In this document: positions 3,988-8,465 of the stretch, piece by piece
How positions within the stretch are numbered: position 1 is the stretch's first letter
Layout: each line of letters opens with the position of its first letter
Assembly (NCBI GenBank): GCA_013416795.1
Contig: RQSC01000637.1
Location: 1 to 17,250 of the forward strand
DNA from: Prasinococcaceae sp. CCMP 1430
Lineage: Eukaryota; Plantae; Prasinodermophyta
Direction of reading: 5' to 3'
Length of the DNA: 17,250 bases
The notes under the pieces: generated by a model
Seen by the model: the letters and a program-made list of their open reading frames with translations, nothing else
Databases searched by the model: none
Told to the model about the DNA's origin: nothing
Program-made: the position numbers and the translations under genes

Positions 3988-6303
3988 TCACTCGGTGCTG
4001 AGCTCGAGCACCTCGAGCACCTCGGCGTCCTCCGCGAGCCGCTCGACCACCTCGCCCACCACGCACGCGTGCGGGTAGCCCGCCCGCACGAGCTCCTCCA
4101 CGCACGCTCGCGCGCGCGCCGCGGGCACCGAGGCGAGCAGGCCGCCCGCGGTCGTCGGGTCGAACATGAGGGGGTAGGCGTCGCACGACGTCACCTCCGG
4201 CGAGAGGCCGCGCACGCCCCTGCGCAGCCGCAGGTTTTGCGGCTGCAGAGAGCTCATGATGCCCTTGGCGACGCACTCCTTGGCGCCCTCCAGGAGCGGC
4301 ACGGCGTTCATGTCGAGCCTGGCCACGCAGCCGCTCGCCTTGGCCATCTCGATGAGGTGCCCCGCCAGCCCAAAGCCCGTCACGTCCGTGCAGCAGCTCG
4401 CGCCGTGCGCAAGCAGCACGTCGGCGCCCTGCCTGTTGGACTGCTGCATCTGCTCGAGCGCCGCGCTCACCCACCTGCCCTTGGCCTGCCCGCGCATGTC
4501 GGCCGCGAAGAGCGCGCCCGTGCCCACCGGCTTGGTGAGCACCACTGCCTCGCCGGGCGCCATGCCGCCCTTGTGCATGATCTCCTGTGGCTTGGCGGCG
4601 CCCGTGATGGCGAAGCCCAGGGAGACCTCGGCGCCCTCGCAGGAGTGGCCGCCCACGAGCGCGCAGCCCGCCTCCTCAAGCACGCTCACAGCGCCGGCCA
4701 TCATCTCGAAGAGGTCCTCCTCCACCTTGGCGTCGAGCCCGAAGGGCACCGTGGCGATGGCCAGCGCGCTCAGCGGCCGCGCCCCCATCGCGTGCACGTC
4801 GCCCAGCGCGTGGTTGGCCGCCACGCGCCCGAAGACGTAGGTGTCGCTCACGAAGGCGCGGAAGAAGTCCACCGTCTGAATGGTCACGCACCCGTCGGGC
4901 ACCTTGACCACCGCCGCGTCATCCGGCGCGTCCAGGCCCACGAGGATCTCCGGGCCGAGGTTCTGTTTCGGCAGGCGCGCCATGACGCGGCTCAGCACGG
5001 TGGCGCCCACCTTGGCGCCGCAGCCGCCGCAGCGCATGGGCACCGCGCGGATCGCCGCGAGCGCCTCCGCGCCGGCCGCCGCCGCCGCCGGGGGCGGGGC
5101 GACCTCCTTCTGCTTCATGAATTCGAGCTTGTTGTACTTGTCCATCCACGCGCGGTCGATCCTGTCCTTCATCGTCCAGCACCAGCCGCCCTCCAGCGCG
5201 AAGCCGCCCTTGGACAGCACGGCGTACTTGTTTCCCGTCGTGATGAGCCCCATGAAGGTCTTCTGCGGCGCGAAGGGCTTGAGCGCCTCGCCCAGCGCGA
5301 CGCGGCGGAGGTTCTCCGCGAGCGGCATGCCCTGGCGCACGGCGAAGACGCCCGCCTTGGGGCGGGGGTGCTCGAGGACGTTCGCGCAGTCGCCCGCCGC
5401 GAACACGCCCGGGTGGGAGGTGCTCTCCAGGGTGGGGTGCACCGCGACGAAGCCGTCGCCGTCCGTCGCCAGGCCGCTCGCGCCCAGCCACTCGGCGGCG
5501 CGCGCCTGCGTGCACCACACGCAGGCGTCGTGGTCGATGCGCTCGCCCTGGCCCTCGCCCTCCGCGCGCAGCACGATGGCGCCGCTCTCGACGCCCGCCA
5601 CCTCGGCGTGCTCGCGCAGCTCGAAGCCCTCGCGCTCGCCCGCGATGCGGCGGAAGATGGCGCGCACCTTGGCGGGGTGCGTGGGCAGCGCCTCGCCGCG
5701 CGTCACGCAGCGCACGCGCACCTCGGCGCGCCCGGCGGCCTGCTCCGTGAGCGCGTGGTGCATGCTGAGCGCGAGCTCGATGCCGCCGGCGCCCGCGCCG
5801 ACCACGGTGAGCTCGAACCGCCTGCCGCTCCCGGCTGCGTCCTCGGCGTCGGCCCTGATGGCGTCCCAGCGCGCGCAGAATCCGTCGATGGGCTTGACGG
5901 CGGTGGAGTGCGCCCCGGCGCCCGGCACGCTGCCGAAGGCCGGCGTGATGCCCACGTCGATGGAGAGCGCGTCGTAGGCCACCGGCGGCCTGCCGCCGCT
6001 CAGCATGACGCACTTGTCCTTGAGGTCGAGGCCGATGGCCGTCGCGTGCACCAAGCGCGCGCCGGCGAACGCGCACAGCGGCCCCAGGTCCACGTGGCAC
6101 TCGTCGCGCGTGTAGTAGCCGGCGACGTACCCCGGCAGCATGCCGCTGTACGGCGTGTGCACGTCGCGCGCCACCAGCGTCAGCCGCACGCCCGGCAGCG
6201 GCCTCATGCCGAACATCTTCAGCACGGCGACGTGCGAGTGGCCGCCGCCGATGAGCACGATGTCGGCCACGCGCGGCGGCGCCGCTGCACCGCCCGCGTC
6301 CAT
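3988..6303 (-). CDS. selD: Selenide, water dikinase (selenophosphate synthetase) fused to an N-terminal FAD-dependent pyridine nucleotide-disulfide oxidoreductase domain; 771 aa, intronless
   Basis: N-terminal domain: LIGGGHSH, PYSGMLPG, VVGAGAGGIE, VFAAGDC, RPKAGVFAVRQG. C-terminal domain: MRCGGCGAKVG, DDAAV, QTVDFF, FGRVAANHALGDVHAMG, GGHS, LTKPVGTG, CTDVTGFGLAGHL, DPxTAGGLL. In-frame TAA upstream of ATG 6303. Confidence 0.96.
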   Translation of the reverse strand: MDAGGAAAPPRVADIVLIGGGHSHVAVLKMFGMRPLPGVRLTLVARDVHTPYSGMLPGYVAGYYTRDECHVDLGPLCAFAGARLVHATAIGLDLKDKCVMLSGGRPPVAYDALSIDVGITPAFGSVPGAGAHSTAVKPIDGFCARWDAIRADAEDAAGSGRRFELTVVGAGAGGIELALSMHHALTEQAAGRAEVRVRCVTRGEALPTHPAKVRAIFRRIAGEREGFELREHAEVAGVESGAIVLRAEGEGQGERIDHDACVWCTQARAAEWLGASGLATDGDGFVAVHPTLESTSHPGVFAAGDCANVLEHPRPKAGVFAVRQGMPLAENLRRVALGEALKPFAPQKTFMGLITTGNKYAVLSKGGFALEGGWCWTMKDRIDRAWMDKYNKLEFMKQKEVAPPPAAAAAGAEALAAIRAVPMRCGGCGAKVGATVLSRVMARLPKQNLGPEILVGLDAPDDAAVVKVPDGCVTIQTVDFFRAFVSDTYVFGRVAANHALGDVHAMGARPLSALAIATVPFGLDAKVEEDLFEMMAGAVSVLEEAGCALVGGHSCEGAEVSLGFAITGAAKPQEIMHKGGMAPGEAVVLTKPVGTGALFAADMRGQAKGRWVSAALEQMQQSNRQGADVLLAHGASCCTDVTGFGLAGHLIEMAKASGCVARLDMNAVPLLEGAKECVAKGIMSSLQPQNLRLRRGVRGLSPEVTSCDAYPLMFDPTTAGGLLASVPAARARACVEELVRAGYPHACVVGEVVERLAEDAEVLEVLELSTE

Positions 6304-6515
6304 CGCTCGCGCGCGCGGCGGAGGGGGTTAGGCGGGCGCCCTCGGCGCCGACGGCGGCCTGTGCGGGCCATCGCAGGGGTTGCCGCAGGATGGGAGGCTG
6401 GGGAGTGTGTGGAGGAGAGGGGGGGGGGGGGAAGGGGGGGACGACGGATGCCGTCCGTGGCGGGGACTGTGCTGCCACACAGAGCGCGAGGGCAGGCCGC
6501 GCTGGGCGGCGCGAT

Positions 6516-7114: not shown

Positions 7115-7119
7115 TTACA
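7115..7119 (-). terminator. Candidate UGUAA polyadenylation signal of the peroxiredoxin mRNA
   Basis: TTACA on + reads TGTAA on -, about 285 nt past the Prx stop and downstream of the SECIS candidate. UGUAA is the established chlorophyte poly(A) signal. Confidence 0.45.
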
Positions 7120-7224: not shown

Positions 7225-7296
7225 GGCAAGCGTAGGAAGTTTGTCGGCCACCCAGCAGGCGCATGCCTTTGTGCGTGGGGGCGTCATGCACTTGCC
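7225..7296 (-). promoter_or_regulatory. Candidate eukaryotic SECIS element (type II) in the peroxiredoxin 3' UTR
   Basis: Minus strand reads GGCAAGUG-C-AUGAC-GCCCCCACGC-AC-AAA-GGC-AUGC-GCC-U-GCUGGGUGGC-CGAC-AAACUUCCUA-CGCUUGCC. Hand fold gives an 8-bp helix I, a UGAC/CGAC core with tandem G·A pairs, a 9-bp helix II with two bulges, an unpaired AAA and a 3-bp apical mini-stem. Confidence 0.72.
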
Positions 7297-7402
7297 GTGC
7301 GGAGCGGATGTGGCGGGCGGCGCGGGCGGCGGGCGGGTTGCGGTGCCGCGTGCGTCACGTAACACGGATGTCGGACGGGTGGGCGCATCGGGTCCGCTCA
7401 GC

Positions 7403-7780
7403 TTAGAGAGCCTTGATCTCCTTGAGCATGTTGTCGATGCAGGACACCTCGGGGAAGTCGTCGCCGGCGGGGTCCTCCTCGCCGAGCGGGCCCTTCTCCG
7501 CGACGTTGAGCACCTTGATGATGCCGTTGTCCACGTACGCGGCGAAGCGCTTGCAGCGCGGGTTGCCGAGGTCGGCCATCGGACCGGGGTGCTTGAGCTC
7601 CATGCCGAGCGCGTCGGTGAGCTCCTTGCGGGTGTCGGCGAGGAACTTGACCATGGTACCCTCGACCTTCATCTCCTTCGCCCAGGCGGACATGCAGGCG
7701 CCGTCGTTCACGCAGAAGACGAGCACCTCATCAATCCCGGCCTCCTTCAGCTGGTCCTGTCCAGCGAGGTAGCCCGGGAC
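7403..7780 (-). CDS. Peroxiredoxin, Prx5/type II (Redoxin) family; last exon only (126 codons). Upstream catalytic exon not visible; probable selenoprotein
   Basis: Acceptor CTCAG at 7785-7781, then VPGYLAGQDQLKEAGIDEVLVFCVNDGACMSAWAKE…FLADTRKELTDALGMEL…RCKRFAAYVDNGIIKVLNV…*. VPGY, CVND…AW, LAD and KRFA are Prx5 hallmarks. TAA at 7405-7403. Confidence 0.9.
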   Translation of the reverse strand, partial: VPGYLAGQDQLKEAGIDEVLVFCVNDGACMSAWAKEMKVEGTMVKFLADTRKELTDALGMELKHPGPMADLGNPRCKRFAAYVDNGIIKVLNVAEKGPLGEEDPAGDDFPEVSCIDNMLKEIKAL

Positions 7781-8016
7781 CTGAGAGTTTTAGGAAATAA
7801 TCGTGAGTGTGTGTGTGTGTTTGTTTGTTTTTGGGGGGGGGGAGCAAGGGCGCAGACGTGTCAGCTGCGCGCGCCGCCGGCGTGGCGCTGCCGTCGCGAA
7901 GGCATCGCACGATTTCCAGGCCCCGCGCGAGCATGCGGGCGCACACGCGTGCCGAGGGGCAATCGGGGCGTCGGGGCCGCCCTCTGCCGCCCCCCACGCG
8001 CCCGCGCCGCGCCCCG

Positions 8017-8465
8017 NNNNNNNNNNNNNNNNNNNNNNNNNNNNNNNNNNNNNNNNNNNNNNNNNNNNNNNNNNNNNNNNNNNNNNNNNNNNNNNNNNNN
8101 NNNNNNNNNNNNNNNNNNNNNNNNNNNNNNNNNNNNNNNNNNNNNNNNNNNNNNNNNNNNNNNNNNNNNNNNNNNNNNNNNNNNNNNNNNNNNNNNNNNN
8201 NNNNNNNNNNNNNNNNNNNNNNNNNNNNNNNNNNNNNNNNNNNNNNNNNNNNNNNNNNNNNNNNNNNNNNNNNNNNNNNNNNNNNNNNNNNNNNNNNNNN
8301 NNNNNNNNNNNNNNNNNNNNNNNNNNNNNNNNNNNNNNNNNNNNNNNNNNNNNNNNNNNNNNNNNNNNNNNNNNNNNNNNNNNNNNNNNNNNNNNNNNNN
8401 NNNNNNNNNNNNNNNNNNNNNNNNNNNNNNNNNNNNNNNNNNNNNNNNNNNNNNNNNNNNNNNNN
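8017..8465. other. Assembly gap (449 N), probably hiding the 5' exon(s) of the peroxiredoxin
   Basis: Run of N immediately upstream of the peroxiredoxin intron. Confidence 0.95.

Follow-up and report, generated by a model that had tools for sequence, protein, structure and literature searches.

Which residue serves as the catalytic center of a peroxiredoxin whose readable sequence begins just past the active site, and does a hairpin downstream of the stop codon bear on the answer? The question is raised by a gene on the minus strand of the 17,250-nucleotide stretch of DNA analyzed here (the window; 72% GC). The initial annotation of this locus proposed that the hairpin is a SECIS element and that a missing exon carries a TGA, to be read as selenocysteine (Sec), five residues ahead of the VPGY with which the visible exon starts. 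On the evidence described below, we put at about 90% the probability that this Prasinoderma coloniale gene encodes a peroxiredoxin of the Prx5 type (plant type II-like) with Sec as its peroxidatic residue.

The last coding exon of this Prx5-type selenoprotein occupies 7406..7780 on the minus strand. By translation, it begins at 7780, right after a CAG acceptor, and its 125 codons, VPGY...KEIKAL, end at a TAA stop at 7405-7403; the product starts VPGYLAGQ and reads VPGYLAGQDQLKEAGIDEVLVFCVNDG...RCKRFAAYVDNG...KEIKAL. Pfam assigns the exon to the Redoxin domain (PF08534; 36.5 bits against a cut-off of 26.6, E 5e-9). The best database match is PRCOL_00002341-RA, a 170-aa protein of P. coloniale whose residues 46-170 are 100% identical to the exon, and the best PDB matches belong to the Prx5 subfamily: Vibrio vulnificus Prx3 (5k2i), poplar Prx D-II (1tp9) and human PRDX5 (1hd2). 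In each of the three, the alignment with the exon starts five residues past the enzyme's own peroxidatic Cys. The Prasinoderma protein shares with these Prx5 and plant type II structures the domain, the conserved Arg in RxKRF and, judging from its near-identical relatives, the active-site motif PGAFTPxC-SxxH/Q-(V/L)PG, with an identity of only about 30–40%. The conserved catalytic Arg segment, R-x-K-R-F, is present in the exon as RCKRF and aligns with the RxxR of 5k2i; R75 and R78 are invariant among 36 sequences. Whereas the structures use Cys at the peroxidatic residue, the Prasinoderma protein is predicted to have Sec there and, unlike them, to read U-S-T-C, with an additional Cys three residues past the Sec.

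Where, then, is the active site? An assembly gap at 8017..8465, to which no strand applies, hides exon 1, together with the 5′ flank and the beginning of the intron, as judged by colinearity with the metagenome contig L003. Six such contigs (L001-L006) match the window at 95–99%, with L003 reaching furthest upstream. From L003:519 onward, this contig aligns colinearly, at 96% identity, with the window sequence that descends from 8016, while nothing in the window corresponds to L003:1-518, so that the gap hides at least 518 nt. The readable 3′ part of the intron (7781..8016, minus strand; 236 nt, with the acceptor ...CUCAG at 7785-7781) is colinear with L003:519-749. By this comparison, exon 1 (180 nt) would lie entirely inside the gap, preceded by ~124 nt of 5′ flank and followed by the initial 214 nt of an intron that measures 445 nt in total; the sequence from 8466 upward does not join onto the peroxiredoxin gene.

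Exon 1 can be read in L003, which is the one contig that covers it at near identity. It lies at L003:125-304, begins MGGRSSKMVQVGD and encodes MGGRSSKMVQVGDAFPAIKLDDGFAGLGCPKVDMAERLAGKKSIVVGLPGAFTPT-TGA-STCQ, that is, 60 codons ending ...GLPGAFTPT-U-STCQ, with the Sec codon as codon 56 (L003:290-292). The DNA reads ATG...GGC CTG CCG GGC GCC TTC ACG CCG ACC TGA TCG ACG TGC CAG|GT and is followed by a GT..AG intron of 445 nt (L003:305-749) and then by VPGY. The TGA thus falls on the peroxidatic position, five codons ahead of the Val of VPGY, as the initial annotation had anticipated. The predicted product would be a protein of ~185 aa from two exons, with Sec at residue 56. Since the peroxidatic codon and its motif lie inside the gap, we infer from the relatives of the window strain that the gene in the window itself also carries TGA at this codon.

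The published gene model bears on this point. The first 45 residues of PRCOL_00002341-RA are identical to the L003 exon-1 translation; they were not found in the readable window, either as 7-mers or by tblastn, because exon 1 sits in the N gap. After these residues the published protein passes from ...KKSIV straight into VPGY, leaving out VGLPGAFTPTUSTCQ. The model splices from a GT donor located 15 codons upstream and so removes both the TGA and the active site, which is the expected behavior of a gene predictor facing an in-frame stop. Although the initial annotation called the gene unannotated, a model of it exists, and instead of being truncated, as was foreseen for standard pipelines, it is spliced around the TGA. 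A model from Pavlovales sp. CCMP2436 (T492DRAFT_845085, NCBI) contains the same error, with ...AERLAGKKTIV joined to VPGY and the Sec-bearing active-site segment omitted. We also note that, since residues 1-45 of the published protein correspond to N in the window (8017-8465), the annotators must have had sequence there; it is possible that they used another assembly version or that the region was masked.

Relatives at two distances carry the same TGA. In a second Prasinoderma-like species, whose protein is ~86% identical, three contigs (L087, L088 and L089) have it in contiguous DNA without an intron and read ...GLPGAFTPT-TGA-STCQVPGYLAGQ...; since they are intron-less, they confirm the exon junction CAG|GTC. 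Among more distant plankton relatives, comprising loci from JGI metagenomes and metatranscriptomes with 50–69% identity, TGA occurs at exactly the same codon (GLPGAFTPT-u-SxxQ-VPGY) in 80 of 80, and the coding sequence is conserved on both of its flanks. The search for orthologues with Cys or TGA at this position, which had been suggested as a check, therefore returned TGA in L003, in L087-L089 and in all 80 relatives. The 321 homologues in protein databases are nearly all fragments of 100–140 aa beginning (M/V)(Q)VPGY, and a few end ...PGAFTPT, a pattern that marks ORF callers halting at a Sec codon.

Could the TGA nonetheless be a true stop, in a broken or split gene or in one whose exon 2 is translated separately, with the hairpin as a GC-rich stem that has nothing to do with Sec, for instance a 3′-end or regulatory structure? 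Termination is incompatible with a TGA that is kept at one codon in all 80 relatives amid conserved flanking amino acids. DNA of 72% GC does form many stable hairpins, and Rfam finds no SECIS here; however, as described below, the Rfam negative is uninformative, and the hairpin has AUGA, AAA and GA at the spacing of its orthologues and is the sole conserved island of the 3′ UTR. We regard this explanation as scarcely credible. Somewhat less remote, although still improbable, is a reversion of the peroxidatic codon to Cys (TGC or TGT) in this strain, which would make the hairpin a fossil SECIS. The gap hides the codon, and Sec-to-Cys replacements with a leftover SECIS are documented in algae, an example being the Cys-PRX of Symbiodinium minutum (PMC7539508). 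Yet a predictor would have had no reason to skip exactly 15 codons around a site that encodes Cys; the 96%-identical L003 has TGA, as do the 80 of 80 relatives; and purifying selection on the SECIS is visible between two species. A Sec codon in the gap is the reading that we retain.

If the UGA is decoded as Sec, does the hairpin have the structure of a SECIS? We assign a type-2 SECIS element to 7225..7296 on the minus strand, on the basis of its fold, of models trained on orthologues and of a footprint against a sister species (L090:477-521). Helix I pairs 7296-7289 (GGCAAGUG) with 7232-7225 (CGCUUGCC) over 8 bp; its 5′ strand begins 106 nt past the stop, and a lower stem (7308-7300 with 7224-7216) lengthens the helix. 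The core G.A/A.G quartet is formed by AUGA (7287-7284; 115 nt past the stop) opposite GA (7245-7244). Helix II pairs 7282-7272 with 7257-7247; it is bulged, as first described, but the count of 9 bp does not stand, since there are 10 bp with single-base bulges at C7275 and U7250. Above it lie an unpaired C-AAA (7271-7268, with AAA at 7270-7268) and a GGC/GCC mini-stem (7267-7265 with 7260-7258) closed by the loop AUGC (7264-7261), all on the minus strand. The 96-nt hairpin region has a folding energy of -44.8 kcal/mol (z = -3.2 vs shuffles). A UGUAA at 7115..7119 (minus strand), which is conserved in L003, is a candidate green-algal polyadenylation signal and, if used, would put the SECIS inside the 3′ UTR. 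The hairpin parts, the VPGY exon start and the TGTAA (7119-7115) were all found where the initial annotation had placed them.

The element has in common with the canonical eukaryotic type-2 SECIS (Rfam SECIS_1, RF00031; SECISearch pattern AUGA_AA_GA) helix I, the internal loop, the AUGA/GA quartet, helix II, the unpaired AAA, the mini-stem, the small apical loop and the location in the 3′ UTR. It differs in that the distance from AUGA to AAA is 13 nt, compared with the usual 11–12, in that helix II is bulged after the third pair, and in having no score against the Rfam model. The pairs flanking the quartet are U.C and C.C, vs the commoner U.U or U.G. The 13-nt spacing, the helix II bulge and the Rfam non-match are all common to orthologous algal elements, which read AUGACGCCC...(13–14 nt)...AAA, as in the window. 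A spacing of 13 nt is therefore the norm for this family of peroxiredoxin SECIS elements, and the reservation that had been attached to it falls away.

Failure against SECIS covariance models had been named as an outcome that would count against the hairpin, and with Rfam it does fail: cmscan found no SECIS on 901 nt, on 131 nt (even at E<=10) or on the whole window. We rejected this non-match as evidence against a SECIS, as a control on 19 orthologous mRNAs with in-frame UGA was equally blank. Since these Sec mRNAs were missed as well, Rfam has no power for this lineage; its SECIS model misses the lineage's form of the element altogether. Models built from orthologues do match. A first hand-written descriptor was too strict, with candidates at roughly one locus in three, and was used solely as a model seed. 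Plain MAFFT alignments of the candidates, in which the 3′ strand was misaligned, were discarded in favor of a two-sequence seed with hand-checked structure, which recovered 13 elements, and iterative covariance-model alignment. The resulting models, R2 (13 elements) and R3 (15 elements), were made from orthologous 3′ UTRs only, with the window and L001-L006 left out.

With R2, positions 7291-7240 score 16.0 bits over the full model length, the top match of the window (E 0.03 for the whole 17-kb window, both strands, filters off), and with R3 the same positions score 17.8 bits, again the best match in the window. Scores of 16–18 bits are modest. In an R3 search of 150 kb on both strands, 31 of 31 matches at >=14.9 bits lay on the sense strand, 3′ of a peroxiredoxin stop codon, and the best other match reached 11 bits. 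In the alignment of orthologous elements, 92% of cells are paired, vs 27–59% in slid controls, and compensatory changes are seen in 15 of the 16 pairs; because these alignments are fitted to the structure of the model, the pair counts are inflated.

A phylogenetic footprint singles out the same hairpin. When the 3′ UTR in the window is compared with that of the sister species (L090), the sole significant similarity is a stretch of 45 nt that runs exactly from AUGA to GA (7287-7243 vs L090:477-521; 84%, E 1e-10); for coding DNA in the vicinity, the identity is 86%. The differences number seven and affect both bases flanking the quartet (C.C to A.G), the bulged U, the base ahead of AAA and three of the four loop bases. 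None touches the 26 paired bases or AUGA, AAA and GA. By our own calculation, a Fisher comparison of the unpaired or non-Watson-Crick positions (7 of 10 changed) with the paired or motif positions (0 of 35 changed) yields a p of ~3e-6. Both species have a helix I, but its sequences are unrelated. Between L003 and the window, the element has two substitutions, one in the 3′ internal loop and one that changes the U7290-G7231 wobble of helix I to U.U.

It might be argued that the gene is a selenoprotein gene but that its functional SECIS is another element further downstream, as SECIS elements can sit far from the stop codon and the putative UGUAA bounds only the first 300 nt or so. We think this very unlikely. 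The best other minus-strand matches 3′ of the stop reach 8.9 bits (6947-6908) and 5.1 bits (7081-7036), and this hairpin is all that the sister species keeps in its UTR. Together, the orthologue-only models and the footprint support the identification of 7296-7225, on sequence grounds, as the SECIS of the peroxiredoxin gene, in line with the original proposal.

Is Sec available to this organism? A single-exon selenophosphate synthetase (SPS) fusion (Pyr_redox_2 + AIRS + AIRS_C, 771 aa) occupies 3988..6303 on the minus strand, as identified from its ORF and by Pfam on the 97%-identical copy in L001. It begins 1.1 kb 3′ of the peroxiredoxin stop on the same strand, an adjacency that is kept in L001-L004. 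The genome paper on P. coloniale describes an alga with many selenoproteins (PMC7455551). That report and the presence of a selenophosphate synthetase gene next to the peroxiredoxin indicate that the Sec machinery is present in the genome. In 4 of 4 longer metagenome contigs, the SPS start codon is immediately preceded by a segment of ~290 nt that is missing from the window (6321-6323 vs L001:1523-1811), which could reflect an indel polymorphism or a collapse in assembly.

In eukaryotic Sec insertion, SBP2 and eEFSec with Sec-tRNA(Sec) recode UGA by means of a SECIS in the 3′ UTR. By homology with this process, the in-frame UGA of the Prasinoderma mRNA would be read as Sec through the type-2 SECIS at 7296-7225 in its 3′ UTR; the kink-turn quartet AUGA/GA would bind SBP2, which would bring eEFSec with Sec-tRNA(Sec) to the UGA. 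From established Prx5 catalysis, the selenolate would then be expected to reduce peroxide in the conserved Thr-Sec-Arg site (PGAFTPT-U, RCKRF), and the selenenic acid would be resolved by a thiol, likely that of the invariant Cys in VFCVNDG, which lies ~27 residues further on. The sequence U-S-T-C, which the Prasinoderma enzyme shares with a minority of relatives, places a redox motif of the UxxC kind at the peroxidatic position and suggests another, rather doubtful, route, in which a local selenenylsulfide with Cys59, instead of the distal VFCVNDG Cys, resolves the selenenic acid. If this reading is true, a thioredoxin-like UxxC mechanism would have been grafted onto the Prx5 scaffold.

Some of the plankton contigs have features of their own. 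In-frame fusions join the Sec-Prx5 domain to another domain in L074 (the whole contig), L066 and L070. The partner is glutaredoxin-like in L074, where it has a second in-frame TGA (SYuPHA), SelU/PRXL2-like in L066, again with a second TGA (LGuPLC), and inorganic-pyrophosphatase-like in L070. Two database proteins, P0093 and P0102, resemble Prx5 units arranged in tandem. The 2020 algal survey is said to describe selenoprotein fusions for GST and MSRA only (PMC7539508). A metatranscriptome contig with a Sec-peroxiredoxin mRNA, L018, opens with 105 nt of eukaryotic SSU rRNA (L018:1-105; Rfam, 120 bits) and is probably a chimeric assembly.

How much of this is new? Sec-peroxiredoxins were described in 2007 in Ostreococcus tauri, O. 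lucimarinus and Thalassiosira pseudonana (Lobanov et al., 2007; PMC2375036). Among the Sec proteins of algae, PRX ranks with the most widespread (Jiang et al., 2020; PMC7539508). The proteins of these surveys and the one predicted here have in common a thioredoxin-fold peroxidase, the replacement of the peroxidatic Cys by Sec, recoding through a SECIS in the 3′ UTR and a marine picoplankton host. They differ in that the window gene comes from the Prasinodermophyta, a phylum outside those surveys, and in that its public model is without Sec. Prasinoderma and peroxiredoxin are both absent from the main text of Liang et al. (2019). The biology of a Sec-peroxiredoxin with a 3′ UTR SECIS in marine picoalgae is thus already established and will not surprise a specialist; the new part is this gene, or at least the fact that it is publicly mis-modeled.

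The main value of our analysis is therefore the correction of a faulty gene model, as PRCOL_00002341 is without its catalytic center and T492DRAFT_845085 has the same defect. A general blind spot is involved, since hundreds of database entries for this peroxiredoxin family are ORF fragments of 100–140 aa, cut at the UGA. Finally, the corrected gene would add a Sec-peroxiredoxin to the selenoproteome of the Prasinodermophyta, the earliest-diverging phylum of green plants.
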